A DNA stretch of 64,000 nucleotides from Anthoceros angustus (GCA_010909165.1 MU008209.1:394919-458918); one strand, 5' to 3'; positions 5,373-62,186 are shown, numbered from the stretch's first letter. Numbers and translations: made by a program. The notes: generated by a model from the sequence alone, not told the origin.

Positions 5373-5384
5373 TGGTATCAGAGC
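5373..5384 (+). promoter_or_regulatory. Primer binding site, initiator tRNA-Met type
   Basis: TGGTATCAGAGC immediately after the LTR. Confidence 0.9.
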
Positions 5385-14610: not shown

Positions 14611-15248
14611 ATGCTTTACTAGAGCAGCGCCCTCTTATACTACGCCCAAGGGCGTCTTTATTACACTCCTATTCGAAATGGTAGCCACCAAGATGCCCTA
14701 GCCTACTATTTCCTTCCTAACCGCTATCTCGGCCGGTGATGGGTCCGGAGTGTTGGTTTCGCCTCGGCGCCGATGACCCAATCCCGTGCCCTGACACTTG
14801 CGGCGCACCCAATCGGATGATCCGCGAGGCGGGACCCTTCCCCTTCCCGAGACCCGCCGTTGGAGCTCTGCGTCGGTGATCCGACAACCGTGGTAACCAC
14901 CACATCCTCCTCTCTCGCCTCCAGTGGATCCCCGCTCAGGGGCCACCGGTTGGCTCCACCGAGTGTGGCAGACCTCTCTCCCTCCCGAGTGGGACTCCTG
15001 GGGTGCAGGTCTCGACTCGGGTCCGATCCTCGGTCGGCCTTATTTCGAGTCCGGACCTCGGGTCCGGTCGTCGGGTTCGGACCTCGAGGTCCGACTCATT
15101 ACTGTGGTCCGACCTCTACTGTGGTCCGACGTCCGGACCCCACCACTGACCCTCGATTGTTGGGGGTCCACCCTCGCTCACCGGACCCCCATCCTGGCTT
15201 GGGTCCGGTTGGTTTCCTCCTTCCCCACCCCTTTCGGGGCCCTCTGTC
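14140..15248. mobile_element. GC-rich unclassified segment, probably the distal part of element X
   Basis: Lies between the copia RT break and family A. Contains GGTCCGA(CCTC) short repeats at about 15040-15140. The CTGTC/CTGAC flanks of family A suggest continuity with 36161 onward. Confidence 0.4.
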
Positions 15249-15627
15249 GTGAAGCGTGAAAAGTTTGGGACTACCGGTGTCCCGAGTATGAGCTTGTCCC
15301 GGGGCAACTCCACCAATCTTAGCTGTGAGGACTATGGGATCGCCTTGTCCCATAGTGAGGCCCGCCCCTTGGTGGGACCGCCATGTCCCAAAGTTGGGAT
15401 GGCCCCTTGCCCTTGTGGATCGGGTAAGGTATCCGTCGCAGCTAAGGGGAACGCCATGTCCCATGGCCGGGACGATCTGGTTGCGCCCTTGCCTCCTCGT
15501 TACTAGCCCACTTATTGTCACTCCAGATTCGGACTCGTAGAATGGGGCCAAAGTTTCGGTCCGAGTATGAGTCCGCCACAAAGGGTCCCCTTGCAAAGAA
15601 CAAAATATGCTGGGAGAGCATCTGCTC
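15249..15627 (-). repeat. Family A repeat B2
   Basis: Same ends as 16410-16786 (GTGAAGCGTGAAAAGTTTGGG...GGGAGAGCATCTGC); the GC-rich middle is diverged. Confidence 0.85.
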
Positions 15628-16405
15628 AAAGGGATCCCCGCGCAATGGCAGGAATCACGAGATTTCTTGAAGATTTCTTGGCTAGACCAGTTTCTGGCTG
15701 GAGCCAGAATCAAGCCTTCCTTGTAGGGAAGCACACGAGCAAAACACAGATCCGATCGATCTTGGATTTCAGATTGCAAGGGTTCACAAAGTGCTTTCCT
15801 CCCTAACCCAAGGCGCTGCACGATTTGAAGACTACCCTCATTCCTTGCCCCACGGTCCTCAATCCCGCCGCCATCATCTCCATGCTCCGCTCGATTCCCA
15901 CCGATGTTTGCGCCATGATGCGAAGCAACCCTCACGCTTGGTGGTGCTCCTCCCACGTTGATCGGTGCCTTGTTTGGGTTTGGGTCCAGCTTTGGTTTCA
16001 CACCTAAACTAAGTGGCTTTTCTAGCCTACCTAGTTATCCGCTCATAACGGATCTATTTCTATAACTAGTATTTAAAGGAAATGAATCCTTGGACTATGG
16101 GCCAATCAAAATAAAGGATATGTTTTCATGTCCTTGGTTAATGAAAATGCCTAACCAAACGTAGTATAAAAGCAAGCATACATCGAGTTCACATTCTTTG
16201 CATGCGCCCTTAGTTCTTGTGTCTGACGTTGGGCTGGGCTGCATTTCCAGCCTGTGGACTGCATGTCCCATGGCTGGGATGGCTGTCCGGTGTGGACGCC
16301 ATGTCCCATGGGGGATCCGGCTATCCGGCTGGACTACCATGTCCCATGGCGATTCTGTCCTTGGGGATCGCCATGTCCCATGTCTAGGACGGTCTTGGCA
16401 ACCTC
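15628..16405 (-). repeat. Family A repeat A2
   Basis: Matches 35309-36160 from AAAGGGATCC to GGTCTTGGCAACCTC. Confidence 0.9.
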
Positions 16406-16409
16406 GGCC

Positions 16410-16786
16410 GTGAAGCGTGAAAAGTTTGGGACTACCGGTGTCCCGAGTATGAGCTTGTCCCGGCAACTCCACCAATCTTAGCTGAGGACTATGGGGTGCC
16501 TTGTCCCATAGACAGCCTGCAGCCCCGGCTGGACTGCCATGTCCCAAAGCTGGGATGCCGGCAGCCCCGGGACCGCTGTCCTGGCTGTCGAGTCCGGCAG
16601 CCTGGCTATGGGCCATGTCCCATGGCGATAGTCCTGTTGCAGCTCCTTGCCTCCACATTAGCCCACTTATCGTCACTCCAGATTCGGACTCTGTAGCTGA
16701 ATGGGGCCAAAGTTTCGCACCAGTATGAGTCCGCCACAAAGGGTCCCCCTTGCAAAGAACAAAATATGCTGGGAGAGCATCTGCCC
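16410..16786 (-). repeat. Family A repeat B1
   Basis: Copy of B2, adjacent to the end of the PHD ORF. Minus-strand TGGGGTAGGG at its inner border (16784-16793). Confidence 0.85.
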
Positions 16787-16809
16787 TACCCCAGCCATTG
16801 AAGCTTGTG

Positions 16810-18010
16810 TCAGAATGTCGAGGCTGCCGGAGAGGCAGCACATAGTGGACAATACCACGCAGTTCCCGGCACCCTGAGAGAGGCGCAAAGCAAAATAGGT
16901 GGTACCACGTGCTGGTCGCACAGATCAGCGTGGTCGTCTCCTCCGCAACTGCATGGGTAATCACCGAGGTACCCAATCACGACAATGGTTGGATCCAGTT
17001 GGGCAAATGGCAAGGCGCACAATTTTTCATGTGATCCTTGGTGGTACGTCCATCTGATCCTTGTAGCACTAGCACACCATTGTCCTTGACCTCCGAACTC
17101 GCAACATGTCGACGTGGTGGTGTCAAGGGTGTCTCCCACTTGCTTCGCAAGCAAAACAAAGTCCCACCGAATTTCTTGAGCTTGGGTCTGAAGCTGCCGC
17201 TGCGAGTGTGGGCATATCTAAGGGTGTCCCGATGTTGGGCAATCCTCAAATTAGCCATGGCCATCGGCATGGCTTGTCAAACAGTGCACGCCCGACCGAT
17301 GACCGTTGCCCAAATTGCTGGATCATCCAGATCCACTACCTCATAGAGTTGCTTGGCAATGGAGCTAGGCGGCATGGGTTCCCTCCCAAACAGCAAGAAG
17401 TAGGGACTGAAATGTGCCAAGGAGGCATGCCGACTCACACGGTAGCCCATGGCGATGTAGGGAAGAGCCAAGTCCCACTCTGTCTTTGGCATTTGAAGGC
17501 AGAGCTTCCTTAGACCCTTCTTGATGGTCTGTACCATCCGTTCAGCCAGGCCATCAGCCTGAGGATGGTCTCGGCTGGTCCTACGATGGTCGATGAGCGC
17601 TGTGTCCAGCAGGTCTTGGAATTCCCCTCGAAATTCAGACCCCTGATCCGTCAAGCACTCGGAGCAGCTCCCAAAGCGACTCAACACATTGTGAAGAAAG
17701 GCCTGAGCGGTGCTTTTGGAGCTCTTGTCCGGCAGGGCCACCACCTCTACCCACTTGGAGAAGTGCTCCATCATGACAAGAATGTACACGTTCCCTCGTG
17801 GTGTCTTGGGTAGTTCACCCAACAAGTCACAAGACCACCTAAAGAACAGCCCCATGATAGGCAAAGGGTGTGAGGGTTACGGATGGTGAAGGAGGTCTTC
17901 ACTGTCAGCCCTTGCAACAAAGCCACCGCTTGACTTGGGCGTACATCCCTTGCCAATGGAAATGTGGGAGGAGCAAACTGTAAGTACGCTTGACTCCAAA
18001 ATGGCCTGTC
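16810..18010 (-). pseudogene. Family A integrase (H2C2 zinc finger, DDE core) with degenerate C-terminal PHD finger
   Basis: GHFGVKRT, WSCDL...EHFSKWVEV...TDQGSEF...PQADGLAERMVQTIK, and C-terminal YPC...WYCPLC. Confidence 0.9.
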
Positions 18011-19543
18011 GTGCAAAAACAGCTGGACATCGGATAGCACAACATTTCGCTCACGCCTTGTGCATGTGGTAACACCACTAATCGACTACAAACATTTGCA
18101 AAGAACGTGACATGTCATGATCATACTCAACTACGACCCGAATGCACATCCGGCCGAGAGCTGATTAGAAAAGAAAACAATAATCCTGCTAAATTCCCAT
18201 CAAAATGCCTCATTCAATCGCCTATCACCGATCAAACGCGTGAGTTTGAGAGTTCACAGAGCCGGACATAGTGCCGCAACCCAAAACCAAGTGTCGACTC
18301 GGACATCCGTGATCGAAATTCCCAAGCAAGCTTTCGGCATTCACTAATCTATAACGGCCAGAGCTCTCCTCCTCGCTCAAGAGACTCTCAAGACTATCCT
18401 AAGCCAAGCACGCTTGCCTCTTGTATCCGCGCCTAGCCTGCCGCCTCTCCGCCCCTCCCGCCATGCATCGCCTTCCATCCTTTTCCATGATTGCTTCCTG
18501 TCACTCTCACGCTCCCGCAATCTCCTCATGATCCGGCAAATCAATCGGTAATTTCACCACGACCTTCCCGAAAACTAATGGCTAACAATACATGACATTT
18601 CTAGATGTCAAGATATTACCGATATCCTCTCTCTATGTACATGGACTTGCCTCAACCAATGATCCCGACACGCGTGAAGATGACATATTGGTCGGCAAAA
18701 CAAATTGGACATCGGATAGCACAACATTTCCTCACTTTTGTTGTATGTGGTAACACCACTAATCGACTACAAACATTTGCAAACGTGACATGTCATGATC
18801 AACGGCTCAACTACGACCAATGCACATCCGGTGAGAGCTGATTAGAAAAAGAAAACAATAATCCTGCTAAATTCCCATCAAAATGCCTCATTCAATCGGT
18901 CTATCACCGATCAAACGCGTGAGTTTGAGAGTTCACAACAGAGCCGACAGTGCCGCAACCCAAAACCAAGTGTCGACTGACATCCGATCGAAATTCCCAA
19001 GCAAGCCATTCACTAATCTACAACGGCCAGAGCTGCCCCCTCCGCTCAAGAGACTCTCAAGACTATCCTAAGCCAAGCACGCTTGCCTCTTGTATCCGCG
19101 CCTAGTCGCCTCTCGCCGCCCCTCCCGCCATGCATCGCCTTCCATCCTTTTCCATGATTGCTTTCCTTGTCCTCACCAGCCTCACAATCTCCTTGTTATG
19201 ATCCAAAGAAATCAATCGGTAATTTCGCCACGACCTTCCGAAAACTAATGGCTAACAATACATGACATTTCTAGATGTCAAGATATTACCGATATCCTCT
19301 CTATGTACATGGACTTGCCTCAACCAATGATCCCGACACCGTGATTCCAAAGATGACACCGTGCAAAACAAATTGGACATCGGATAGCACAACATTTCGC
19401 TCACACAGGTATGTGGTAACACCACTAATCGACTACAAACATTTGCAAAGAACGTGACATGTCATGATCAACCAACTACGACCAATGCACATCCGTCGAG
19501 AGCTGATTAGAAAAAGAAAACAATAATCCGCTAAATTCCCATC
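18011..19543 (-). repeat. Family C 3' repeats: B3 18011-18201, A3 18202-18685, B2 18694-18879, A2 18880-19358, B1 19361-19543
   Basis: About 680-bp periodic sequence. A units run AAAATGCCTC...GATGACA and B units run G(T/G)GCAAAA...AAATTCCCATC. Confidence 0.9.
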
Positions 19544-19581
19544 CCCATAAGCCAAGAGAAGGCCAACACGAGAATGCTGGT

Positions 19582-20800
19582 TCAACTAGAACTGCCAGGA
19601 TCCCAAAGAGGTCTGGAGCTGGTCTCTCCATTACACTGAGCACAATACCACAATCCTTCAGGCACCTCTGTTAATGGCGGAACAAGGCAAAACAGATGAA
19701 AGCCTCCATTACAACCATCACAAAGCAACATGAGCTCAGGGTCATCCACCCGTTGACAAACTTGACATGGATAATCACTAGGTGGCACCCAATTCGCTGT
19801 GACAATCGTGGGATCCAGATTAGGTAGATGGCAAGGAGCACAATTGGTCATGTGGTCTTGTATAGTCCGCCATCGCTCCTCGAGCACCAACACACCTGGA
19901 TCAAGTTCCTTCACACGCAGTAATGCCGTTAGTAGAAGGTTCTAATGTGTCGCCAGCTTGTCGCTGAAGATAAACATAATCGCCAACATGGAACTTCCTC
20001 ATCTTAGGTCGAAATGCCCACTCGTGTAAGCATAACGTAAAGAGTCCCGATGTTGAGCAATTTTCACCGCCATCGCCATAGGCATGGCTCGCTAAACAAC
20101 ACCGCCTGCCGCCAACAACCTTAGCCCAAGTGGCTGGATCATCCAGCTGGACCACCTGGTTCATTTCCTTGGCAATGGCAACCGGCGGAACCGGATCTCG
20201 TCCAAACAAGAGGAAATACGGTGAAAAGTGAGCTAGAAGCGTGTTTGCTCATACGCACCATAGCCACATATGGCAAAGCCAAATCACTGTCTTAGACATC
20301 TTGAGCAACAACTTACGAGCCCTTGTTTGATGGTCCGAACAAGTCGCTCACCAAACCGCCGCCTTGAGGATGGTCTCGCTAGTGCGTGATCGATGAATGC
20401 AAGTCTCAGATCTTGGAATTCTCCCGAATGTGCCTTGATCCGTCAAACACTGCATGACTACCAAAGCGATCGAGAACATGCAAAGAAGGCCCGAGAAGTG
20501 CTTCGGATGACTTGTCCTAGAGCCACAATTTCGCCCACTTGGAAAAATGTTCCACCATCACCATCACATACACGCTACGAGGCGCCCGGCAAATCTCCTA
20601 TAAGATCACAAGACCATCGTAAAACAAACCCATAATGGGTAATGGCGATGGCTTGATGTTAAGACTTCACTCACACCGCTCGCAAAGACGCCACCACGCC
20701 ACGCACTTGAGCATACATCCCAAACCAATGGAAATGAGGAGACAATAAACTATATGTTCGCTTGACCCCAAAGTGACCCATGTCGAATGAGCACGCATGA
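19582..20800 (-). pseudogene. Family C integrase with intact C4-H-C3 PHD finger
   Basis: CQVCQRVDDPELMLLCDGCNGGFHLFCLVPPLTEVPEGLWYCAQC at about 19636-19770; DMGHFGVKR and FGRDPVPP integrase motifs upstream. Confidence 0.9.
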
Positions 20801-20959
20801 CCAAAGCTATTCATGTGGTGTGCACCAGCACGAGCCCGTAGACAAGGTGCGGATCAAATAGCCATCTTTCCAACGATACCGAGCTCCGTCAGATCCGATC
20901 TCGCTGAAGTGTGTGCAATCAGCAGAAACAATCCACTTTGAAGAAACCGTAAGATGATC

Positions 20960-22200
20960 ATCTTCCCATATGTCGCGATGTGCCCGAAATCGCAATGGTT
21001 CTCCATGTCCCACACATAGATTCCGCAAACATGTTGTCAGTAAGAAACTTGACCCGTGATCTCATGGTCCCGCTTAGCACACGCCTCATCCTCATCACGT
21101 AGTCGGGATGTCGAAAGCACATCCGCATTCTCGTGTGTGATGCCGTGGCGAACGACTTGGAAGTCATAATCCGCAATGTCATTGCCCACCTTGCGACCTT
21201 GCCACCGAGCTTAGTATTCGTCATAAGCCAACGTAAAGGCGATGGTCACCACCAAAGTAAATGGCCGACCATACAGATAAGGTCCGAAATGGCAAATGCA
21301 TCATGCCAAACACTCCTTCATAGCTAGGATAATTGCTCTCACCTTGTTGCTACGTGCATAAGCGATAACACGCTCATGTCCTTCTTCGTCGCCAGTAAGC
21401 CGGCTCCAATACCTAATCGACCTAATCCGTATGAAGCACAAATGGCTTCTCGAAGCCGGGCCATCACAGCGCCATCACTTTCTTCAACAATTCAAATGCT
21501 GCTAAGTCCGTCCAATCCCAAATCACGCCCGCGCAGAGGTTGTTAAGTGGTTTAGCAAGACGCTAAAATCTTGAATGTAAATCCGTAGTAGTTACACAAT
21601 CCCAAATAGGAGCGCACTGACACACCGAGAATGTGTACCTCTAACACCTTGAACCTTTGCAGGTGGCATGATACCGTTAGGCACAATCCTATGTCCCAAA
21701 TAGGCGACAGATCCATGCCCACACACTTAGGATGGCATTTGAGTCCCGCCTATGGAGCTGCAAAATAGATCCTCTAAATGCCTCAAATGAGCCTCAAAAT
21801 CCTTCGTGCACGAGCACATCATCAATATAGCAAAGCGATGAGCAGCCCGGACAATACCTTGTCCATGATACAGAAATGTAACAGTGCATTTCAAACCCAA
21901 ACGGCATAAACAACCATTCCCATAGCCGCGAGCCATGAAATGTCTTTTTATGTCTTCTTCAACCATTGGCACCGGTTGAATCCTTGCCGCAGGTATAGAA
22001 CAGAGAAGAATGCTGACTGTCCGATGCTATCGAATAGCTCCTCCGTGTGGGCATCGGATAACGATCTTGAGCCGCACGCATTGATCGGTCGATAATCACC
22101 ACACATGCGTCGTCTATAAACCCCGATCGCCCTTCTTAGGAGGAAGAAGCACCGTGCATAAGTGGATGGTCGAATCAATCTCGCCTCAGCCTCGCTTATC
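20960..22200 (-). pseudogene. Family C RT and RNase H, heavily frameshifted
   Basis: RMCGDYRPIN, LRQGFN, and TNTKLGGKVARWAM motifs. Confidence 0.85.
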
Positions 22201-22599
22201 GACTATTTCCCATTCGCAGATCGAGCTCGTAACGACGCCGGTAGATGGGCTCATTAGTTGTCACCGCACTCAACTTCATAACGCAAGTACCAAGGTCCTT
22301 CATCGAAAACGCAAAACAATCTTGATATGTTATCATAAGCAATCCGCTGATCATTTGTCAATCGGACCCATCTTCCACCGGAAATCAGCCACTCTTAGCC
22401 TCGATTGCTTCGCCGATAACGCAACGAGTCGCCAGATCATCACCGTCGGAAACGATGATCTCTAAAATGCATACTCCCCGCCTTCCGAAAAGGCATGAAA
22501 AGCTCGAAAAGGCGATGAACAAAGATCCGATGACACAAGCGCGATCGCCAATCGACAAAGCCGCAAAACCAGGACCAAAGAAAAGTTGAAAGCCAAACA

Positions 22600-23500
22600 G
22601 ATGTCGACGAGTGTCACAAAGATGTAAATCCATGGCACGACCCAGCAAAGACATCACGAGCAATAGAAATGCCGAGCGGCAGATCGTGAGTCGCAAACCC
22701 CATAATGCTCCCGCCTCGCCAGCGGGTTCCTCCCAACGCCGAGTCTCGAATGCAAGAATAATCCCGGCCTTCCACGATACGCATAAGACCGAAACTAACA
22801 AGTGTAGGCAAGGTACGTCGCGGATAACCCACCTCATTGGTAGCAAACCATGGGGCTTTCTCCGGTCTGAATCGTCGAGGAGAGTGATAAACTTCGAGCA
22901 CATCCTGTAATTGACGTTCAGCAGGACGAATAGTATGATGTAAAGACAATACAAGGATCACAACGAGCCCGCTTTGTCCAAAACTGCGAAGACGATGAGC
23001 ATAATCACGCACATGCATCAAAACCGAGGCGGGCCCAAAACATGCTGCACCAAATTGGCGTCATGGCGCACAGACAGCCGAGAATCTAGATGTGCAGGAG
23101 TGTTTTCCAGAGTGTAAACCACCGACGGATTACACTGCTGAAACTCATGCTGCAGCTGCACGAGAGGCAAGAACAACCCAGATCGCGAATCCTGTAGGCC
23201 ATCCCCAAATCCAGCTTGGGAGAACCCCTGGCATTCCCAACCCGCAACCACAAGGTCCACACGTCCTAAAGCTTGAACATGGGAGGATTGAATCAACAAG
23301 ATGTCTTGTGGCAGGGTAGTAAAAGCACAATTGCAAGCGGACTGATTAAATTGCTGGGGAAAACGGATGCACAATCGCCGCAAACGATGTGCGAATTTGA
23401 CGAGCCACTAAGCGCTTATCACAGTAATAACTATGAATACGCAATCCGCACGCAATGGCCTCCAAGCTGCAAATACCTCCAAACAACTCCACCAATACAT
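22600..23500 (-). pseudogene. Family C DNMT3-like C5 cytosine methyltransferase domain
   Basis: Motif I VELFGGI (23469-23492); motif IV VDLVVAGWECQGFSQAG..GLQDSRSGLF (about 23170-23265); motif VI LENT (about 23100); AHRLR..WT (about 22980-23010); IMGF and LLGRAMD (about 22625-22720). Confidence 0.85.
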
Positions 23501-23899
23501 GCCTCGATGAAAGGCCACGAAATAGTCACACGTGTGAAAGCAACTCCTGTGCAATCTGCCCAAAGGTGCGAGGCCAGCCCAGCCACGATACCGAACGCAA
23601 ATTGACATGATGTTGAGCCTCAACCGACAACGAGGGTGACCGACAATCATCTCATCAACAAGAGCACAAGCCTCCACCATCGAGTCGTGCGCCACTTCAT
23701 CGATAGTCTCATCAACTCGAAAACAACCATTGCTCATGCTGATCATCCTTGACCAACCGAGGAATAAACTGCACCATACAGACATGGCGACCAGCCAGCG
23801 ACACTTCCATGTCATCATTGCGGTGATGCAAATCAAGTGGAATGTAGGCCAACCGCTTGCCTCCTTGCTGCCAATCAATTATGTAAAAAGCTTGCTCTG

Positions 23900-24435
23900 T
23901 CCAATTATCAATACTGACCCCAGGTGGAAACAAAAACTCCTGGCACAAGAGTACATCATAATTGGTAGCAGAAACCGCATAACGAACTCGAGAGTCACAT
24001 CGGCGCACGGTCAAGAGCAATAGACATTGGAAACACTGTCTCACCCTAGATCGGCTCCACAGCTCCCATTGCTGTACGGATGTTCCAGGGAGAGTTGCGT
24101 AATGCTGATCCCATCAACTGCAATCGAGTGGCCAGAGTCTGACCAATAATAACTGGCTGAGCACCAGTATCGAACAACACCATACGAGGTGCAACACCAT
24201 TGATCGTCACATGACCAGCGGTATTGTTCACCAATGCATGATTGACCCGAACTTGCAGGCGATTTGTTGGTTGCACCAACGGATTGCCTTGAGTGGCAAG
24301 GGCCAAGTGTGAAACCATCACCGGTTTTCCAGCAGCAAGTGGCTCAATCCAATCCAGCTCACTGGTAGCTAGAGCATCAGCTAGTGCTGTCTCACCAGTA
24401 CTCGGCTTGTCTAACTCGACTATCACGGCGTACAC
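23900..24435 (-). pseudogene. Family C aspartic protease
   Basis: VLFDTGAQPVIIG. Confidence 0.85.
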
Positions 24436-24999
24436 TGAACCAAATGATGTAAAGGAAGCAACCTGCGGGCCCCTATTCCCACCTCCTCAAGAGAAAATAA
24501 AGGTACATGCACCGCTTGTAGCAATCCCTCCCACGTCATGGAAGACAAACGAATAGGTTCACCTCCTTGATCTCTCACGACTCACGCCCGATATGGCAAA
24601 TGGTCTCGAACCACGCAATGGCGGAATGACGCCAAAGGTACAATGGCAAACGACTTAGGCATGATCGCCCTAGCTTGTCGCAACGATACTTTTGCCGTGG
24701 GAGCCGAACCTCCGCCGTCATGCTGGCCACTCGACCTAACCAAGAGCAAGGTAAGTCTTCTAGCATACTAGATGTGTGCACAACGTGCTCGCCTGTAATT
24801 TTCTTCGCCTCACCATCTTGTGAGCCATGCAAACATGGTAAGGATCCCCATAATCTTCTCCCACACGTACATGCTCATCAGGAGAGTCACAAACCATAAC
24901 TCCTGCAAGTTTATCTTCAGACACCACGAGCGAAGCTCCTCCAGCAGGCTTGACTGCCAAACTAGCAGTAAGTGTACCCAACTGCGTTGTAAGAGCAGC

Positions 25000-26500
25000 C
25001 ACAGCAGTTTCCAGTGCGGTTACCTTACTAGCATTGGCCACAGTCTTCTGCTTAAACTTCTCCCGCTTTAATTTGCTCTTGAAACAGTCCCCGCAGATGT
25101 CCCCATTATAGTAGGAGACCCAATGGCAATCATGGATGCTGAAATTTCACCATCTCCACCCGCCTTTTGCACTCGACGCCAGAAACTGAAACAGATCGTC
25201 ACAACATGACCGTGACAAGATGTGTAATACAATGACTCCATCACGCATTTGCATGGAGACAATGTTCGGTGCTTCCACATCTGTTACACAACGGTGAAAA
25301 GTGAAAGCAGGTTCGCTTATCGGTTTAACCTGTGTAGGCTTTACCACTCCACTGCTGCCGACTCCCGTCGAGTTACTTTTGCTAGCGGCAAACATGTGCT
25401 GATAATGCGAGTACGCCTTCGAGTGTTTGTAAGCATGTCGAGAATGCTACCCTTTCGCCTCGCTCAAACACTGCTCAAGAGTGTATTGATCTCCGTACTT
25501 GTCAACAAGTGAAGTGAACAATTGGAAATGAAATAATGGCTCCGTCTCCAAAGCACTAAGAAACTTCGAGCACTGATCAATCAACATGCCAAGACTTCCT
25601 TAGCTTCAGAGACGACGGAAAAGCCATTTGAATTTTCCTTTCGTGTAAACGCAGACAACTATAATCTTCTCTGGGTCTTGAAAGGAAAAGCCTTCTCAAG
25701 AATGATAAAGAATTCCTCCACCGGATTAGCGTAAGCTGGAACCTCAATGTATTCTTCTATACCCGCCGTGGCCGCAGCACGCTCTTGGGAGGTCATACTG
25801 ATCACTCCTGGAGGTTTCACATTAGGTGACACAGTACTAGCAGCGATGGCGGCTTGATGAGCTGACACCGCTAATGCATGCAAATTATTATACGCCACCT
25901 GCAAGGCTTGCTGATAAGCAGGATTAGGAGTCACAGATGTAGCCAGCAATGCAGCTGCATGTGTCTCATATAGATCGAGAGCCTCATCTGCCATGTAACC
26001 AGGCAGCTGCTCAAACATGTAACGATCTGAAAAGCTATGCCATGCTTGAATTTCACACGGCTAGTAAGGAAGTTGAAATAGAGCTGAAATCACGAAAGTC
26101 TGCGTGCAGTCTACCAGAAAACTTATCCGATTTGGCTGGAAGAGAACCAAGACGCCATGATTTGAGTCACTCGAAGAACCGAGCTCGACCGCTAGTCGTG
26201 ATCTCACCAATGGTGACCAGCCAACCAGATACGGCCGTTGAAGATGTCTCTTCAGAACAAGCGCATCTCCCGCTTGCGGGTCTTCCACGGATGCTCACTC
26301 ACGTAATCGATGATTTTGCTCTTTTTGGAGGTGTGCGAGCCACATGCTTGAGCACCCTCCTTGAACGTAATTGGTGGTGCCTCACCACTCAGCTCATCCG
26401 GCGATCCGTCATGCATGTAAGAACAATGATCGAAACCGATTTCATCCAACAACTTGATTACCACATTCTGTTTCACGACATCGAATCCGGACCCTAACTC
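25000..26500 (-). pseudogene. Family C gag-like region with zinc knuckles
   Basis: MFEQLPGYMADEALDLYE, homologous to family A MFEQLSSYLADEALDLYE; Cys/His knuckles at about 25100-25300. Confidence 0.75.
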
Positions 26501-26628
26501 AAGGCTTTCTCAAGAACCGTAACAAGGTCCTCGCAGCTTGACATCAAGGTGATGACATATGCAACTAGGAACATAGCTCAAGAACCCTAGTTCTTTCTCA
26601 AGCACGACATCACACGCGCCGTCGGAGC

Positions 26629-26640
26629 AGTCTTGAGAGT
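26629..26640 (-). promoter_or_regulatory. Family C candidate self-priming primer binding site
   Basis: AGTCTTGAGAGT directly abuts A1 and is the exact reverse complement of 26828-26839. Confidence 0.7.
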
Positions 26641-27148
26641 AAAATGCCTCATTCAATCAGCCTATCACCGATCAAACGCGGTGAGTTTGAGAGTTCACAA
26701 TGTGAGCCAAACATAGTGCCGCAACCCAAAACCAAGTGTCGACTCGGACATCCGCATCGAAATTCCCAAGCAAGCTTCGGCATTCACTACATAGCGCCGG
26801 AGCTCGTCCTCCCTCCGGCTCAAAGAGACTCTCAAGACTATCCTAAGCCAAGCACGCTTGCCTCTTGTATCCCGCGCCTAGTCGCTGCCGCTCTCGTCCT
26901 CCTCCCTCCCGCCATGCATCGCCTTCCATCCTTTTCCATGATTGCGTTTCCGGTCTTGTCACTCTCACCAGCTCCCGCGAATCTCCTTGTTATGATCCAA
27001 AATCAACTGGTAATCACCACGACCTTCACGAAAACTAATGGCTAACAATACATGACATTTCTAGATGTCAAGATATTACCGATATCCTCTCTATGTACAT
27101 GGACTTGCCTCAACCAATGATCCCGACACCGTGATTCCAAAGATGACA
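26641..27148 (-). repeat. Family C repeat A1
   Basis: Matches 18880-19358 and starts TGTCATC on the minus strand. No B sequence on either side. Confidence 0.9.
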
Positions 27149-28700
27149 GCCCATGTCAGCTGGCACTCGATTTAATCAGCTCCCTATCGTGGTGGTGGCA
27201 CCAATCGCTCCAGCCCATTGGTCGCCTCCTCAAAGAATGCCCATCACGCCATTGATACTTGGCCGAATTCTTTCTTGCTCGTGCTCAATGGCTGATCCAA
27301 ATTGTCCTGTTTGGACAAATAGGAGAGTTTCGGAGTCTTCCTAGATGTCCTTGGACCTCCTGTCCCCAGCATATGTGCTCAATGCTAAGGACGCCCCATA
27401 TTGGATTGTCCCATACGGGATACCACCCAGCTTGTCAAAGCCACCATCGCAGCCACCGACACATGCTGCAGATCTCCATCATCTTGGTCCTGTCGGCTTC
27501 TGTAACATCTTCGCAACAGCACTGGGATTCCGAGAGAGAGTGTCCGCTTTGGTGTGTGACTCGCTGGTGCACCACTTGAAATTCATAGTCCTGCAAGATC
27601 ATGGCCCACCTTGCAAGCTTCCCACTCAACTTGGTGTTGGTCATCAGCCATTTGAGGGGCTGATGGTCGTGACCAGCGTGAAGGGCTTGCCATACTGTGT
27701 AGGCCTAAATGACAAACCGCCCATACAGCCGCTAGACACTCCCTTGGTAGCTACTGTAGTTAGCTTCACGATTGTTGCTGCGTGAAGCATACGCAACCAC
27801 CCGCTCCTTTCCATCTTCATCTTGTTGGGCTAGCACAGCCCCTAGGCCCAAGATGCTCCAATCCGTATGTACCACAAACGGCTTGGAGAAGTCAGGTCTG
27901 GCCATGACAGGAGCTTCCGTCAAGCTCAGTTTCAGCGTGTCGAAAGCTTGCTGGGTCTTCTCTGTCCAGGCCCAAACAACATCCTTCCGCAGCAAGTCAT
28001 TCAGCGGCTTGGCAATTCGGCTGAAGTCCCGAATGTATACTCGGTAATAGTTGCATAGGCCGAGGAAAGCTCGCAGGGCAGAGAGGTTTGTGGGCTCTCG
28101 CACCTGCAAGATGGCCTGTACCTTGGCAGCATGAGGCATCGCGGCACAACCCTATGACCAAGGTATGCCACGGTGTCCATGCCAAATTCACACTTGGCGG
28201 GTGACATGTCAATCTTCGCAATCTCTTGAACAGATCTTCCAGGTGCACCAAATGAGACTCAAAGTCCTCTGTGGACCAGGACATCATCAATGTAGCACAT
28301 GAGGTTCGAACGCAAGTACTATGTCCATTACGCTGGAAAGTCACCGGCGTTCTTGAAGCCAAAGGGCATCACCAGCCATTCCACAGCTGCTGAGAGCCGT
28401 GGAAGGCTGTCTTCTTGATGTCCTCTTCAGCAACAGGCACTGGTTGAAGCCTTGACGCAAATCCAAAATCGAGAAGTAGGTAGACTTGCCAATGTTGTCG
28501 AAGATCTCCTCCGTTGGCATGGGGTACCGATCTGGCTGTCACCGAGTTGATAGGACGGTAGTCTCCGCACATCCTCTTCTCTGTCCACATCCGTTGTGTC
28601 CTTCTTGGGAGGCATCACCGTGGCAGATAGTCGGAGCTAGAGGGACGAATGAGCCCGGCTTCAAGCAACTCTTGACAGTGCATCCACCATGTCCCACTCT
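27149..28700 (-). pseudogene. Family A RT, RNase H and start of integrase
   Basis: RMCGDYRPINSVT, YIDD, LRAFLGLCNYYR, VHTDWSILGLGAVLAQ...VVAYASR. Confidence 0.9.
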
Positions 28701-29139
28701 GAGCCGTAGCGCCTCAGATAGGCTCCTTGCTGGTCGATTGATGCGGAAGGTGGTCACATTGCATCGCTTCACCCCGCATGGAGAAGGCAAACAGCTGGTA
28801 TTGGAGCAAGGGCATGTATCTGCTGCCCTTGTGAGTTGGGGCCCCATGACCCAATCGAAAGTCTCAGACATAAGGCTTGGGTGCTGTGAATTGGGAGTCC
28901 CTACTAATCTCCATAGGATCCCCATACTGGACGGTCCCATACTCGGAGCATTGCCATGTCCACGAGCTTGATGCTGAGAATGCAGGGATGGCCATGCCAC
29001 CTCCCCCCGCATCAAGCCAATATGACCGTGGTGTATCCGGGAAGGGCAAATGGATGTGCACAAGAAGATGTGGGAAAAGGACCTCGGTGGGAGCTCCGGG
29101 AATGCCAACAGCTGAAAGGCCAGACATATGCTGATGAGC

Positions 29140-30150
29140 CAAGTGAGTGACAGATCCATAGCGCCCAAGGCGGCATGACCTGGTAACTTGGGAGGCAGCG
29201 GCATGGGTGTGGAAACCCATGACGCTCCGCTCCTCCACATTGGGCTCCTCCCACCGGTGGGTGTTGCTGTTGAACAGCGAGCTTGTCCCCTGTAGGCATA
29301 GGAGCCGTGAAAGCTCACTAGGGTGGGAAGGGTCCGCTGCCCCGGTGGGAGCTCAAGGTGCACGCTGCCACTGTCTGGGATGCCAAGGGTCCAACACATT
29401 GGAGAGCTTGAGAGTGGGGTCCCGAGTAGTGCGGGTGACCACCAACTCTAGCAAAGGTTGAGGCGTTGGTCCAATAGTGCAGGCGATGAGCAAACCGCCA
29501 ACTGGACTCCATGAGCAAGGGCGTGCCCACATGCTGGATGATGGCCATGTCTTGGCGAACTTGCAAGTGTCCCGCGGTGTTCTCCAGCAAGCGCAGTGGG
29601 CTGGTGAACATCCACCAAGATGCGTGAAGGTCCCAAAACAAGGCGGTTCGTGGATCTTGTAATCCTCCCCGTGGCGGCTTGAGAAAATCCGGCATTCCCA
29701 TCCGCAATCAAGTGGATGGGGCCAATGTGGCGGGCCCAATATGGATGTCTTGGGGCTGAGGGTGCAGATAGCTGGCAAGTAGTGAAGGGAATGCACTCCA
29801 AGCAGCGTGCAGCTTGGGACAATGGTCCAATAAATGTAACGTGACCAAGATGCCATTGAGGGGTCCCCAGTGAGTGTCCCGACTGCTCGTCCCATGTCTT
29901 GACCCACCACGTCTGTTCTCCATGTGCCCAGTGAAGGCTCGCTGCGAATGTGGCGGGGCGCGCTTGTGATGCTGATGATGTCTTGGGCCTGCCGGCGGGC
30001 CCCATGGTAGAGAATGGCGTGGAATAGTGAAGAATCGCAGCCGGTGCCATAGAATGCATTGCGCCTTGGGACATGTTCACGACCAAGATGCCATTCAGCA
30101 AAAGAGCCTCAGCTACCAGCAGTGCAAATGCCCCAAATGCAAAGTAATGC
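29140..30150 (-). pseudogene. Family A DNMT3-like C5 cytosine methyltransferase domain
   Basis: FG.ICT..EALLLNGILV (about 30080-30145); IA.WEC..FSQA..GGLQDPRTALFWDL (about 29640-29710); LLENT; AHRL..WTN; VMGFHTH; AALGAMDL. Confidence 0.8.
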
Positions 30151-30376
30151 GTGGCACACGATGATCTTGGCTCACCGTGGTGGAGGATGCCTGTCCGCCC
30201 AAGGGGGAGTGCTGAAGCTGCAGAGCTTGCTGCACTCGTGGAAGAGCTTGCTGAACCAGGTCGGACACTTTGAATGATGGTGGAGTGTCTCCTAGGCAGG
30301 CTGCTGTGACCAAATGGTCGGCCTCGTGATCTGGATCCAAGTCGGCAAGCTCCAGCATGTCACTCAAATGCTGGCC

Positions 30377-31573
30377 GTGGGAGCACCTCGGGGACAGCCT
30401 GAATGGTCGCCATAAGGACTGGAGTAGCTAGGACAGTGGCGACCTCGGTGTCCAATCCGCCATGCAGATTCAAGGGAAAGTGCGCCACTTGCTGACCTCC
30501 ACTACGCCAATCGGGGCGATAGTGAGCTTGCTCTGTCCAATTGTCCACGCTGATGCCGGGTGGAAACAAAAACTCCTGTCCGAGAAGGACATCGTAGTTA
30601 GCAGCTGTCGTGACAAGGCAATGAATGGCCAATGTCATGGCAGCGGCTATCCCGGGCTTGAGCGTGATGGCGCACACAGGTTCCACAGCGCCAGAGGCTG
30701 TCCTGATGTTCCAGGGTGAATGGCGGAGTGCCGTTCCCTGCAAGTTCAACCTGGCGGCGAGAGCCTTGCCAATGATCACGGGCTGTGCCCCCGTGTCCAA
30801 GAGCACAAGCTTGGGAGCATAGCCATTCACCGTGACATGGCCTTCCCTATTGTCCACCATGGCATTGCTCACTCGCACATTCATGCGATTGGTGGGCTGA
30901 ATGCGGGTGCTCCCGAGTACTCCGCGCTGGGACGCAGGCGCATCGCCTCCAAGTGGCTGGCCCTCCTCATGGCTGTGGGAGCACCTCGGGACAGCCTGAA
31001 TGGTCGCCATAAGGACTGGAGTAGCTAGGATGGGCGACCGTATCCAATCCGCCATGCATTCAAGGGAAAGTGCCACTCGACCTCCACTACGCCAATCGGG
31101 GCGATAGTGAGCTTGCTCTGTCCAATTGTCCACGCTGATGCCGGGTGGAAACAAAAACTCCTGTCCGAGAAGGACATCGTAGTTAGCAGCTGTCGTGACA
31201 AGGCAATGAATGGCCAATGTCATGGCAGCGACTGTCCCGGGCTTGAGCGTGATGGCGTGGTCAGCCTCCACACACAGGTTCCACAGCCAGAGGCTGTCCG
31301 ATGTTCCAGGGTGAATGGCGGAGTGCCGTTCCTCGCAAGTTCAACCGGCGGCGAGCCTTGCCAATGATCACGGGTGCCCCGTGTCCAAGAGCACAAGCTT
31401 GGGAGCATAGCCATTCACCGTGACATGGCCTTCCCTATTGTCCACCATGGCATTGCTCACTCGCACATTCATGCGATTGGTGGGCTGAATGCGGGGTGCT
31501 CCCGAGTACTCCGCGCGCGCTGGGACGCATAGGCGCGCATCTGCCCTCCAAGTGGCTGGCCCTCCTCATGGCT
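30377..31573 (-). pseudogene. Family A aspartic protease, present as two tandem copies of about 600 bp
   Basis: LLDTGAQPVIIG region at 30377-30974 and again at 30975-31573, with GTGGG at the junctions. Confidence 0.85.
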
Positions 31574-31669
31574 GTGGGTGGCCTGCCCTGTCACTCCCAC
31601 CATCGTAACATGGTCGATGGTGGTGGGCAATACCCAGCCTGAAACGTCAGGTAAGGCTGCCCATGTGGG

Positions 31670-32045
31670 ATCCACCGGCAGTCCCGGCTGTCCCGAGTAT
31701 GGGACTGCGGAGGCCCGGTGATGGGCTTCTCCTCGCAGTCCTTGGCATGGAGCTGAAGGTGCCTGGCATTGGGACTCGCCTGTCAGTCCCAGGTGTGGGA
31801 CTGTTGAGAGCCAAGGCTGAGATTCCCCCGGCAGTCCCGAGTATGGGACTGCGGAGTCTCGGTGTTGAGCCTCCACCGGCTGTCCCGAGTATGGGACTGG
31901 AGAATCCCAATGCTGGGGCCCTCCTGGCAGTTCTGAACATGGAGCTGTGGTGTGCCGCTGTTGAGGTGTCCCCAGCAGTCCCATGTATGGGACTGGAGTG
32001 TCCCGGCGCTGGGACTCTCCCGGCAGTCCCGAGTATGGGATAGCC
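31670..32045 (-). repeat. About 33-bp coding tandem repeat in the gag-PR linker
   Basis: Recurring GTCCCGAGTATGGGACTG, translating as repeated VPYSGLPGE-like units. Confidence 0.75.
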
Positions 32046-32599
32046 GCGGAAGCTTCAGCTGTTGCCAAGCCCAGCACCTGCTGTAACTGAGCACGCCCAA
32101 CTCCCATGTCCTGGAGGGAGATCAAAGGAGTCTCCAACACCTTGCGCATGATCAAGGTCGGGGTGTACGCCGGTGGTAGATGCGCGCGCACATTCGGCGG
32201 TGTCCCATGACTTGAATGTGGAGGCTGCTCTCTCGGCGCTCCATCCAGGTGATCCTGTCCCCGAACAGGGATGGCCACGCCAGGCGGCAGTGGCGCAAAG
32301 GATCTAGGCATAGTAGCCCTCGCCCTCTGTTGCCGAGTAAGGGGATCAGCGTCCCTAGCTGCAACATCCAAATGTGCCTTCTTCAAGTCACATCCTACCC
32401 ATGTGGCGGGTAGGATCAATCGGCGTGGAATCCACAAGACAATGGATGACAGCCTCATGTGGCAGGCCGTAATCCTCCTCTCCTCCTCACGGGTGCCAAA
32501 ATGGCGCCCGCGGGCTTGGAGGTGGAGGTGCCGCCACCGGCAGCCTGGGCTCCTAGCTGAGTAAGTGCTGCCACCGCTGCCTCCAATGCGGCAATCTTG

Positions 32600-33910
32600 T
32601 CAGTTAGCCGCTCCTTGGCCTTGGCCCCATTCCGCGTGATCGGCCCTTCGACGCATTTGAACGCGGCCGCTGGGAGTCCCGCTGAAGGTGTGGACCGTCC
32701 TTGCCGATATCGCGCCCGGATGCTTTTGAAATGCATCAAATGGCCAGTCTTGTTGCAATGGGAACAATGCAAACCTTCCACAGAAGCTTGCACGCCGGAG
32801 CCAAATGATCCGGGCTGCCACAGCGATTGCATAGCACTGTGGAGGTGGCTGCGGCTGCTGACTTGATTGGCCTGGCCTGAATGGGCTTGGAAACCCCTGA
32901 TCCCACGCCTCCAGATGTGTTCCCCTTGCTGGAAAACATGCTTTGATAGTGCGTGAAGGCCTTGGAGTGTCGAGAAGCATACGCTGAAAACGCGATTTCC
33001 TTGCGCTCCGCTTCTTCATGGACTGTTCGGTGTAGCTGTCCCCATACTTGTCCACCAAAGAGGTGACAAGTTGAAAGTGGAACAATGGATCTCCCTCCAA
33101 CGCCATAAGAAACTTCTCGGCTGCCTCTTGGTCAACATCCCAGTGCCTTCTCGCAGCTTCTGGAGCCTGCGAAAGGTCATCTGGACAGTCTCACCCTTCT
33201 TGCGAGCGAAACTGGCCAGCTCAGCTATTTTCTCAGGAGTCTTGAGCGGAAACGCCTTCTCGAGGATGGCCATGAACTCCTCCACCGGATTGAGGTACTT
33301 GGGAGTTTGGATGAACTCCGGGACCCCAATCGTGGCTGCCACCCTCTCAGCAGCAGTCAGACTCACCACGGATGGTGGCTGAACGGTGGCTGCGACTGTC
33401 CCAGCAGCAATCTTAGCCTGGTGGGCACTCACAGCCGTGGCCAACTTGCCATTGTAGGCAAGCTGCAGCGCTCCTTGAAACTGGGGATTCACCGTGGAGA
33501 TGGTAGAAGACAAATCAGCTTGATGTGCCTCATACAGATCCAGCGCCTCGTCCGCCAAGTAGCTTGAAAGCTGTTCAAACATGTACTGGTGATTGTAAGC
33601 GCCGCCATGCTTGAACCTGACCCGGCTGATGATAGCGTTGAGGGACAGCCGAAAGTCTCGCAGCGATTGAGTGCCAGGCCTCCGGAAAATCTGTCCCGCC
33701 TGTACGAGGGTCCTCCACCTTCCATGGTGTCCGAATCCTCCGAAAGATCAGCTGATTCTCGATCTTGTCTATCAAATTGGGACAAGTTTGTCCCAATTGA
33801 TCTCCCGGCAAGGAGTCGGATGATTCTTTGCCGGTTGAGATCTGCAAAATGGAGACCAGCTGGTTGCTGTCCAAGGTGGCAGGTGGCGTGGCCTGCAAAC
33901 CGCTTGCCAA
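32600..33910 (-). pseudogene. Family A gag-like region with two CCHC knuckles
   Basis: ORFs 33575..33910 and 33016..33582; CNRCGSPDH...C and CSHCNKTGH. Confidence 0.8.
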
Positions 33911-34224
33911 CTCCTCCTGTGCTTGCTGGTGTTGAAAAGAACGCCTTCGCTGTACTCCGCCGGAGTGGTCCGCTGGATGTCCCGTGTCCTCAAGCGGTAA
34001 CGGGGACTGATCTCATGTCCCTCGGGGTGCATCACCCATGTGACTAACGCATAAGATCAGCAACACTCCCTTAAATGTGAAAGAACAACGAAATCCTCCA
34101 CTCACTCCACTCCTGTCGCCAAGCCCGGTGTGAGCGCGCCTCCTAGCAATTCTGGCAGCAAAATGGATTACCCCTACGCTTGGATCACTCCAGCAGCCCT
34201 GGTGTAGGGTAGGGATTGTCCTAA

Positions 34225-34520
34225 CAGTCCCAGCAATGGGACTGGACAGTCCACGAAGTGGGACTGTCCCAGCAGTCCCGGCGCTGGGTCGGGACTGTCC
34301 CTACAGTCCCAGCAATGGGACTGGACAGTCCACGAAGTGGGACTGTCCCAGCAGTCCCGGCGCTGGGTCGGGACTGTCCCTACAGTCCCAGCAATAGGAC
34401 TGGACAGCCCACGAGGTGGGACTGTCCCAGCAGTCCCAGCGCTGTGTAGGGACTGTCCCTTCAGTCCCAGCAATGGGGCTGGACAGCCCACAAAGTGGGA
34501 CTGTCCCAACAGTCCCGGCT
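34225..34520. repeat. 79-bp tandem array (about 4 units) in the family A leader
   Basis: Units start at 34225, 34304, 34383 and 34462, rich in GGGACTGTCCC near-palindromes. Confidence 0.9.
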
Positions 34521-35296
34521 CTCCTCCCAACAATCCTTGAAATGGGACTGTTCCCACAGCCCTTGGAATTAGGACTGTACAGTCCCTAAAATGGGACTGT
34601 CTAGGGGTCAGCACCCACGCCTCAGCCTCTGAGAAAGGTCAGCAACGACAAACGGCACTCACACATCCGAAATTGAAACGTGAGTGTCAAATAAACGTGA
34701 TCCTCCCCTTCCACTTTCTGACCGCGCTGAGCCGGACACCTTGATGGTGGGATCTGTTCTCCTCTCCAGCACGCTGTCACTGTAAGAAACCAGCAGAAGT
34801 GAAAGGGCCGCTCACCAAATCCCAAAATCCCCAAAATCAGAAATGTTGGCAAAGTTGCAATCCGCCTGCTCCTGATCTGGGAATCAAACCAAAGTATCAG
34901 ACCATGCTGTAGCCCGCCTGAAATGGAGATCTTGAGTGGCAAGGTCTGTCCTCCCTCTCCCACAAGCTCTGCTGCAAAGATCGAAAAGGGATGAGAAAAG
35001 CGCTCGCTAGATCTTGAATTCCCAGCTGTATTTGGGAAAGCCCATGGATCAGGCCTGGATCTGGCCTCCTCTCTAGCACGCCATCACTGTAAGGAGCCAG
35101 CAAAGGTGAAGGAATGCCCTGAAGACCTCGAAATCCCAGCTGAATCTGGGAACGCCCACGGGCTGAGCCTGGATTGGGCCACAGCTGAAGGTGTAATCGC
35201 CCAGCTGTGATCCAGGCTCCAAAATGGCGTCGCCCCAGCTAGAGGAGGCGCCTCAAATGTCGCCACTCCGCCTTGGAGTGTCGCCCTTGAAGATTG

Positions 35297-35308
35297 AGTC
35301 TTCGAAAT
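35297..35308 (-). promoter_or_regulatory. Family A candidate self-priming primer binding site
   Basis: AGTCTTCGAAAT directly abuts A1 and is the exact reverse complement of 35513-35524. Confidence 0.7.
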
Positions 35309-36160
35309 AAAGGGATCCGCTGCGCAATGGCAGGAATCACGAGATTTCTTGAAGATTTCTTGGCCAGCCCAGTTTGCGCTGGCTGGGAGCCTGTAAATCG
35401 AGCCTTGGCGCCTTGTAGGGAAGCACGCTGAGCAAAACACAGATCTAATCGATCTTGGATTTCGATTGCAAGGGTTCACAAAGTGCTTTCCTCCTAACCG
35501 CGCTCCTGCACGATTTCGAAGACTACCCTCTGTTCCTTGCCCCACGGTCCTCATTCCCGCGCTCGCCATCATCTCCACGCTCCGCCCAGCTCGATTCCCA
35601 GCTGATGTTTGCGCCATGATGCGAAAGCAACCCTCACGCTTGGTGGTGCTCCTCCCACGTTGATCAGGTGCCTTGTTTGGGTTTGGGTCCAGTTTGGTTT
35701 CACACCTAAACTAAGTGGCTTTTTCTAGCCTACCTAGTTATCCGTTCATAACGGATCTATTTCCTATAACTAGTATTTAAAGGAAATGAATCCTTGGACT
35801 ATGGGCCAATCAAAATAAAGGATATGTTTTCATGTCCTTGGTTAATGAAAATGCCTAACCAAACGTAGTATAAAAGCAAGCATACATCGAGTTCACATTC
35901 TTTGCATGCGTACCTTAGTTCTTGTGTCTTGACGTTGGGCTGGTGGCTGCGACAGTCCCGGCAGTCCCGGCTGTGGGACTGCCATGTCCCATGGCTGGGA
36001 CAGTCCCGGCTGTCCCGGGTGTGGGACTGCCACGTCCCATGGCTGGGACAGTCCCGGCTATCCCGGCTGTGGGACTACCATGTCCCATGGCTGGGACAGT
36101 CCCGGCTGTCCCGGCTGTGGGACTGCCATGTCCCATGTCTAGGACGGTCTTGGCAACCTC
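35309..36160 (-). repeat. Family A repeat A1
   Basis: Matches 15628-16405; no B sequence adjacent. Confidence 0.9.
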
Positions 36161-39430: not shown

Positions 39431-39431
39431 G

Positions 39432-56315: not shown

Positions 56316-56324
56316 TCTTGCTTA

Positions 56325-62180: not shown

Positions 62181-62186
62181 GGGCGA

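Follow-up and report, generated by a model that had tools for sequence, protein, structure and literature searches.

Split direct repeats in a Ty3/gypsy lineage of bryophytes and a proposed integration route from joined cDNA ends

Introduction

How does a retrotransposon that encodes the DDE integrase of a Ty3/gypsy element integrate when its two ends do not carry the same repeat? The question is raised by a 64,000-nucleotide stretch of DNA from Anthoceros angustus (GCA_010909165.1 MU008209.1:394919-458918), which was analysed at its full length and is called the window here. Two retrotransposons on its minus strand, family A and family C, have direct repeats that are split into two parts, A and B. 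Programs that search for long terminal repeats (LTRs), like the textbook life cycle, start from the premise that the two LTRs are identical and that integrase acts on their tips. The window elements have all that characterizes Ty3/gypsy elements except such a pair: the 5' end consists of A only and the 3' end of B-NN-A|B, where NN is a two-nucleotide spacer and the bar marks the joint between A and B. The same holds for 13 of 13 moss-like copies with a 5' end and for a copy, L093, from the liverwort Calypogeia fissa.

An initial annotation of the window had compared the order A1-internal-B1-A2-B2 with the hallmark of PAT, TOC1 and Ngaro elements. That layout is indeed present, and the likeness lies in the geometry and not in the enzyme, as the TG..CA ends and 4-bp target duplications indicate. 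We hold, with moderate confidence, that the best explanation is a gypsy lineage whose chromosomal form is A-int-B-NN-A|B (int, the internal region) and whose integration would proceed from DNA resembling a 2-LTR circle, opened at an internal palindrome.

Results

Repeat coordinates were taken from a self-BLAST of the window. In family A, repeats A2 and A1 aligned at 15628-16405 and 35309-36160 (87% identity, 857 columns, E = 0), and B2 and B1 at 15241-15625 and 16402-16784 (82% identity, E = 2e-86); the resulting order, A1-internal-B1-A2-B2, agrees with the initial annotation, and the coordinates agree to within 8 nt. Alignment of the boundaries placed A1, the 5' end of the element, at 35309-36156, B1 at 16406-16784, A2 at 15628-16401 and B2 at 15245-15625, where it ends in CACGACA. 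Both copies of A begin with the motif TTGCCAAGACC (36142-36156 and 16387-16401, minus strand), and the A2|B2 joint contains two extra nucleotides (15626-15627). The sequence GAGG(T) occurs three times, namely 5' of A1 (36157-36160), between B1 and A2 (GAGG at 16402-16405) and 3' of B2 (GAGG at 15241-15244). Within A1 lie a 48-bp minisatellite, a predicted transcription start and the predicted R-U5 region. The minisatellite is shared with an internal site of the element (35944-36149 and 31684-32040), and the interior further contains a 608-bp tandem duplication (30372-31578) and a 79-bp tandem repeat (34190-34519).

In family C, A1 was confirmed at 26641-27148, starting with TGTCATC, and the repeats were confirmed as such. 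The 3' block, which had been reported as B1-A2-B2 at 18694-19543, proved larger: according to self-BLAST and alignments it runs from 19543 to 18007, where it ends in CACGACA, and reads B-A-B-A-B (B 19362-19543, A 18880-19358, B 18689-18879, A 18202-18685 and B 18007-18201). The A and B copies are mutually 88-90% alike. With this one additional A|B unit, family C has three A and three B copies that are equally diverged, and the extra unit is the expected reciprocal product of an unequal exchange between B copies.

Neither A1 has a B beside it, as had been stated: the 300-500 nt on each side, compared with B by the Smith-Waterman algorithm, scored no higher than shuffled sequence in both families. 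The statement that the repeats of the two families cannot be aligned with each other is borne out for most of their length, with no cross-family BLAST match between the A or B sequences of families A and C, and fails at the extreme termini, which both families share; A begins with TG(T/C)CA and B ends with CACGACA.

Coding content was assessed by scanning 30 open reading frame (ORF) pieces of the window with domain profiles. Both families are old and decayed, with many stop codons, and profile matches together with tblastx gave the pol order protease (PR), reverse transcriptase (RT), RNase H and integrase, which is the Ty3/gypsy order. On the minus strand, family A retains an aspartic protease piece at 30363-31340 (PF13975, E = 4e-12), RT and RNase H pieces at 27438-28614 (PF17919, E = 1e-23, and PF17917; RT_RNaseH at 27438-28151), with the RT motif MCGDYRPIN within 28372-28614, and an integrase at 17280-18006 that comprises an H2C2 remnant and the DDE core (PF00665, E = 3e-14, with blastx matches to intact integrases). 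Its rve domain lies at 17280-17876, and the H2C2 remnant reads GHFGVKRTY from 18006. The gene is split within the H2C2 region by the insertion of family C.

Family C, on the same strand, contains an aspartic protease piece at 24049-24486 (PF13975, E = 6e-7), a decayed RT-RNase H region at 21069-22339 (tblastx matches to a Calypogeia RT-RNase H gene and to family A) and an integrase core with a C-terminal PHD finger at 19585-20784 (tblastx matches to family A and to moss integrases; PHD finger at 19585-19941, PF00628, E = 1e-13). Between protease and RT sits a fragment of a C5 DNA methyltransferase at 23021-23407 (PF00145, E = 1.8e-6, 28 bits at a cut-off of 22), whose motif IV and VI region aligns to M.HhaI. 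No recognisable methyltransferase was detected in family A by profile scan or tblastx. The PHD finger, seen in window family C and in the Calypogeia protein P0042, occupies the place at the integrase C-terminus that the chromodomain has in chromoviruses.

The description of these elements as gypsy elements with an H2C2-DDE integrase and no recombinase was upheld. Integrase matches in copies of the lineage include PF17921 (H2C2) and PF00665 (rve), and the integrase is conserved at 65-80% across hosts; the best matches to the window integrase are 79% identical and moss- or liverwort-like. A tyrosine recombinase (Phage_integrase, PF00589) gave no match in the 30 window pieces, a weak negative given the decay of these copies, and none in the moss-like copy L001 or in the ORFs of the nearly intact L093.

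We then asked how far the layout extends. The integrase homologues are bryophyte-like, one of them being named Calypogeia fissa. Metagenome contigs were scanned with the integrase alignment, which yielded 80 loci, and reference A and B units were mapped on them. The related locus L002, in a genome of 36% GC (the window has about 50%), again shows the order A1-int-B1-A2-B2. Altogether about 30 distinct moss-like copies end in int-B-A-B, six of which also include A1, about 26 end in int-B, and a few units are solo A-B. In all 13 moss-like copies whose 5' end lies on the contig, that end is A alone. The same complete repeat at both ends, which the initial annotation had named as the counter-case to its own proposal, was present in none of the 13 moss-like copies with both ends, nor in L093. 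Self-BLAST of L001 gave no repeats, and mapping with the reference A and B units identified it as an A-int-B copy.

The Calypogeia fissa copy L093 lies on a 66-Mb contig of a chromosome-scale assembly and has the same layout, with A1 and A2 99.3% identical and B1 and B2 100% identical. It is nearly intact, encoding gag-PR-DNA methylase, RT and RNase H-H2C2-rve, and its domains follow in the order PR, RVT_1, RT_RNaseH, Integrase_H2C2 and rve. A second Calypogeia 3' end, L009, belongs to a locus (L009/L092) with a clean B1-A2-B2 end without A1 and an inverted solo A-B unit upstream. As a control, the Riccia gypsy element L090, related and of another family, has an ordinary LTR pair with a polypurine tract abutting the TG of the LTR, and therefore the method does detect normal elements; Riccia L091 is another gypsy family, like L090. 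Sphagnum magellanicum L094 provided a tandem array only and no usable copy.

These results show that the layout is a trait of a whole lineage, from algae-like hosts to mosses and liverworts. Assembly error and chance nesting are ruled out by about 30 independent moss-like copies and by the chromosome-scale liverwort assembly, in agreement with the earlier view that a single assembly accident is unlikely to account for the layout. The lineage is one Ty3/gypsy lineage with the gene order gag-PR-(C5 DNA methyltransferase)-RT-RNaseH-H2C2/DDE integrase-(PHD).

Two minor observations concern these loci. The sequence of L093 and its surroundings contain many repeats of 68-690 bp with 99-100% identity in both orientations (1-5400, 8082-8300, 11756-12557, 13606-13673 and 15486-15639), which look like small non-autonomous insertions. 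Among the moss-like loci, A-int-B copies with good 4-bp target duplications include L001, L005, L036, L037, L055, L062 and about 20 others, and a solo A-B unit with a target duplication is L060; such A-int-B copies and solo units are either deletion derivatives or primary products.

The termini of the elements point to the enzyme that inserts them. In all families A starts with TGTCATG (TGTCATC in family C) and B ends with CACGACA, and the pair forms a short inverted repeat. Of 14 copies that could be scored, 9 have perfect 4-bp target duplications around the entire A...B unit: the A-int-B-A-B copies L002 (TTAT), L035 (ATGT), L057 (ACCT) and L093 (CACC), the A-int-B copies L001 (GATT), L005 (ATAA), L037 (CCAA) and L062 (GTAT), and the solo A-B unit L060 (CAAT). 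Family C in the window is flanked by GGGC at 27149-27152 (5' copy) and by GG-C, that is GGC, at 18004-18006 (3' copy); on its two sides the family A integrase can be read as VPADMG | GHFGVKRTY, each side having a copy of the glycine codon. From the TG start, the CA end and the 4-bp duplication we conclude that a DDE integrase inserts DNA that is ended by the start of A and the end of B.

Inside the element, the same two termini meet again. The B1|A2 junction, CACGACA-RY-TGTCATG, was free of insertions and deletions in 29 copies, and its spacer was GC, GT or AC in eight copies each, AT in four and AA in one, which corresponds to GC plus transitions. Together, the two termini and the spacer make up a near-perfect palindrome of 16 bp, CACGACA-GC-TGTCATG. 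A reading of the spacer as a copy of the target duplication, suggested by family A and L009, was rejected because in L093 and in every moss copy the conserved RY bears no relation to the duplication. The palindrome contains CAGCTG; its centre is nearly always GC, GT, AC or AT, and the flanking CACG and CATG also vary by transitions (29 moss-like loci, L009 and L093), the pattern expected of deamination at methylated CHG and CG sites.

The other joint of the 3' block is variable. In 26 distinct copies the A2|B2 joint was precise in 12, lacked 1-3 nt in eight and contained 1-17 inserted nucleotides in six. Several of the insertions begin with T or TC, as the primer-binding site does. Where the joint nucleotides border the polypurine tract or the primer-binding site instead, they are nearly invariant.

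Putative priming sites for both strands were recognized in the sequence. A polypurine tract lies directly 5' of B1 and consists of a run of 7-10 G followed by AT-ACATGAG at the start of B1; it is invariant in about 47 of 52 copies. A polypurine tract next to B1 was also observed in L093 and, as G-rich tracts, in both window families: family A has the polypurine-like tract GGCTGGGGTAGG directly 5' of B1 (16785-16796, minus strand), and family C the purine-rich tract TATGGGGATGGGAA, which spans the start of B1 (19536-19549, minus strand). At the other end of the internal region, the 11-14 nt directly 3' of A1 are exactly complementary to a site inside A in four families, with four unrelated pairs of sequences. 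In family A, the predicted primer-binding site ATTTCGAAGACT (35297-35308) directly 3' of A1 is matched by the predicted RNA 5' end and self-primer AGTCTTCGAAAT (35513-35524), the exact reverse complement of the 12 nt after A1. In family C, the predicted primer-binding site ACTCTCAAGACT (26629-26640), again directly 3' of A1, is matched exactly by the predicted RNA 5' end and self-primer AGTCTTGAGAGT (26828-26839); all four sites are on the minus strand. The moss family has the pair GTTTTTCTAGAA/TTCTAGAAAAAC, in which L001 shows a compensatory change, and its self-primer site is always found 32-33 nt downstream of a TATA box (TATAAAA), with about 128 nt separating it from the end of A; the Calypogeia pair is 14 nt long.

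These pairs match self-priming of the Tf1 type (summarized in PMC2864245), with a predicted RNA 5' end within A. As in Tf1/sushi elements, the putative primer-binding site directly follows the 5' repeat and is the complement of the 11-14 nt with which the predicted transcript begins, and the enzymes are ordered PR-RT-RNaseH-IN (IN, integrase); the LTRs of Tf1-type elements, unlike the repeats of the present ones, form an identical pair, and integrase uses their tips.

A gypsy element with such repeats has a precedent, contrary to the initial annotation, which knew of no described gypsy lineage with this structure. De Mendoza et al. (2018, Nat Commun 9:1341; PMC5890265) describe KnitGypsy-Dnmt3 of Klebsormidium nitens, whose repeats are DIRS-like and whose domains are Gypsy according to the legend of their Fig. 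4c, and which their RT tree places within Gypsy. The split-repeat gypsy layout is therefore already on record. In that article one sentence is given to the layout, and the sentence does not extend to termini, target duplications, priming sites or mechanism. A literature search beyond it found no other paper that mentions KnitGypsy-Dnmt3, no bryophyte report and no account of termini, target duplications, priming sites, the internal palindrome, joint heterogeneity or mechanism.

The window elements are members of the KnitGypsy-Dnmt3 kind; this likeness rests on the published description, as no K. nitens sequence was among the search returns. Like KnitGypsy-Dnmt3, window family C combines a Gypsy pol and a C5 methyltransferase with DIRS-like repeats, whereas family A is without a recognisable methyltransferase. 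The methyltransferase domain is also present in the Calypogeia copies (L092:8232-9524 and L093:8327-11671). The domain aligns to moss copies at 48-53% and is linked by tblastx to L001, and Calypogeia and three Sphagnum species supply its named homologues. The methyltransferase-carrying gypsy lineage of Klebsormidium thus extends to bryophytes, with copies in a liverwort and close named protein relatives in Sphagnum.

Discussion

The positions of the priming sites and of the integrase sites do not coincide, and this forms the core of our proposal. In standard reverse transcription, the left tip of the complementary DNA (cDNA) is set by the polypurine tract and the right tip by the primer-binding site, so the cDNA should be (B-NN-A)-int-(B-NN-A). 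U3 would then consist of B, NN and the 5' part of A, and R-U5 of the last 128-216 nt of A (128 in the moss family, 199 in family C and 216 in family A). The integrase sites would stand back to back in the middle of the LTR as the near-perfect palindrome, and not at the tips of the cDNA. Compared with this predicted cDNA, the integrated copy appears to be a circular permutation in which a single A2|B2 joint fuses the end of U5 to the start of U3. Because an RNA ending at R within A2 stops short of the A2|B2 joint, this joint has to be remade in each cycle, and the insertions and deletions found in 14 of 26 copies agree with a U5 end freshly joined to a U3 start.

We propose three steps. First, the cDNA tips, the U5 end and the U3 start, would be joined head to tail or in the manner of a 2-LTR circle, which would create the A|B joint. 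Second, integrase would open this molecule at the palindrome of the LTR beside the primer-binding site. Third, integrase would insert the two CA-3'OH ends with a 4-bp stagger, which would yield A-int-B-NN-A|B. Only this form would give a terminally redundant RNA, with R in both A1 and A2, for the next round, and recombination between B copies and between A copies would produce the A-int-B copies and the solo A-B units. Standard two-jump reverse transcription was considered and rejected; with read-through RNAs or alternative primer sites it predicts either symmetric LTRs or primers that are contradicted by the conserved polypurine tract and the self-priming site.

The palindrome has a counterpart in retroviruses, whose integrases cut the palindromic LTR-LTR junction of 2-LTR circles, as reported for human immunodeficiency virus type 1 (HIV-1; PMC1905944) and prototype foamy virus (PMC1180852). 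The retroviral circles share with the present elements a palindrome of two back-to-back integrase ends and a U5 joined to U3 with small insertions and deletions. In the retroviral case, however, the U5|U3 joint and the palindrome are one and the same, and circles are for the most part dead ends, whereas in the present elements the palindrome is inherited inside U3, the U5|U3 joint lies elsewhere and the joined form appears obligatory.

Several observations weigh against integration from joined ends. Steps one to three are ones that we infer. If the other palindrome of a circle were opened, the result would be A|B-NN-A-int-B, a form that neither window family has and that none of the 13 moss copies with an observable 5' end shows; its lack demands a cut bias or a purge that the proposal does not explain. 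Part of the heterogeneity at the A2|B2 joint could be slippage in the short AT run located there, and the rates of insertion and deletion at the joint are similar to those of the (TA)n tract inside B. A-int-B copies (about 26) are as common as the full form (about 30) and could be primary products rather than deletion derivatives. The placement of GAGG(T) in family A departs from the rule of an NN spacer and is unexplained from this one old copy.

The main rival is that reverse transcription alone makes a terminally redundant linear DNA with no closed circle, and we consider it unlikely, though deserving serious attention. At the U5 end, the plus strand would switch end to end onto the U3 start and recopy B, and integrase would trim the product at the outermost TG and CA. 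Such a switch yields A-int-B-NN-A|B and cannot yield the unseen A|B-NN-A-int-B, so it explains the directionality for which opening of a circle has no explanation, and end-to-end switching would also leave small insertions and deletions at the joint. It lacks a guide, however, since the end of A and the sequence preceding B share no homology, and integrase would have to cut the cDNA about 180 bp in from its left end. We know of no precedent among LTR elements for an integrase cut that far inside the cDNA.

We give little credence to the view that A-int-B is the primary product, formed when both palindromes of the linear cDNA are cut, and that A-int-B-A-B arises secondarily, for instance when a circle recombines with a solo A-B unit already in place. 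Copies of the A-int-B form with good duplications occur about as often as the full form, and solo A-B units do exist (L060, L009), as this view would have it. An A-int-B copy, however, would give an RNA without R at both ends and could not sustain the lineage, and a crossover in B between a circle and a solo unit should also yield A-B-A-int-B, which was not seen. In the young Calypogeia copy, moreover, one clean duplication encloses the whole A...B unit, and the repeats are 99-100% alike.

Mobilization in the manner of DIRS, PAT and Ngaro elements, through a circular cDNA and a tyrosine recombinase that is supplied in trans or was overlooked, with the integrase idle, is highly improbable. DIRS elements move by conservative site-specific recombination and make no target duplication. 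The 4-bp duplications and inverted TG..CA ends in 9 of 14 copies are, by contrast, the signature of a DDE integrase, that integrase is conserved across hosts, and the search for Phage_integrase was negative in the window pieces, in L001 and in the nearly intact Calypogeia copy. What speaks for this reading is the repeat geometry, which in the window, in the moss-like copies and in the published account (PMC5890265) is identical to split direct repeats. PAT, Ngaro and TOC1, which belong to the DIRS order, share with the present elements the arrangement A1-int-B1-A2-B2, an internal B|A junction in which the junction between the joined ends is reproduced, and the need for more than one unit in the chromosome to make a full RNA. 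They differ in having a tyrosine recombinase, no target duplication and no TG..CA integrase ends, whereas the present elements have an H2C2-DDE integrase, 4-bp duplications and a palindromic CA-NN-TG junction. As no recombinase was found and target duplications are present, the elements do not belong to the DIRS order.

Least probable of all is that A is an ordinary LTR, B a 3' untranslated segment and B2 a chance neighbour, transduced flank, nested fragment or assembly error, a reading that accords with LTR-finding logic, which pairs A1 with A2, and with the age of the window copies in a repeat-dense region, but conflicts with a polypurine tract that abuts B1 and not A2, with duplications that flank the start of A1 and the end of B2 and not the end of A2, and with about 30 independent loci elsewhere, including a long-read chromosome-scale assembly in which B1 equals B2 at 100%.

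A further comparison is with the Caulimoviridae, plant pararetroviruses that are the sister group of Ty3/gypsy. Circular DNA, a terminally redundant RNA longer than one unit and competent chromosomal copies that exceed one unit would be common to both; the Caulimoviridae differ in lacking integrase-mediated insertion and in being primed by a tRNA, while the present elements integrate with target duplications. More tentatively than the proposal itself, which we continue to favour, and with somewhat less than an even chance of being right, we suggest that a whole clade with a DDE integrase, present in a charophyte-like host, in liverworts and probably also in peat mosses, has joined-ends DNA as its obligatory integration substrate; its attachment sites would have moved from the LTR tips to an inherited palindrome inside U3, and every provirus would be a circularly permuted form of the cDNA.

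The lineage breaks the rule of two identical LTRs in a regular way, and in its layout the ends that reverse transcriptase makes are distinct from those that integrase uses. In practice, standard tools will pair A1 with A2, set the 3' boundary about 180-380 bp short and find no target duplication, and copies will be mis-dated or discarded. The layout further predicts that joining of U5 to U3, normally a dead end, is a required step. If true, this lineage would be a living example of the route in which the circle junction serves as precursor, long rejected for retroviruses, and a convergent, integrase-based counterpart of the DIRS/PAT strategy.

Other features of the window

Outside the split-repeat elements, diverged direct repeats (73-82%) lie at 1-1016 and 38418-39434, about 38 kb apart. 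The region 4767-14612 is a non-coding repeat mosaic with the order X..Y..Z X' Zb Y' Z' and 87 to 100% identity between units; it contains an 812-bp pair that is 100% identical (9381-10192 and 11259-12070), and its GC content of 43-47% is below that of the gypsy elements. On the plus strand, 52000-64000 holds a further gypsy element with a protease at 60294-60731 and an intact RT ORF of 560 amino acids at 60921-62603, whose best matches are to Riccia at 60%. From 62187 this plus-strand element continues as a segment that is 87-91% like family A at 29379-31923. A piece of a copia RT was found at 54715-55179.

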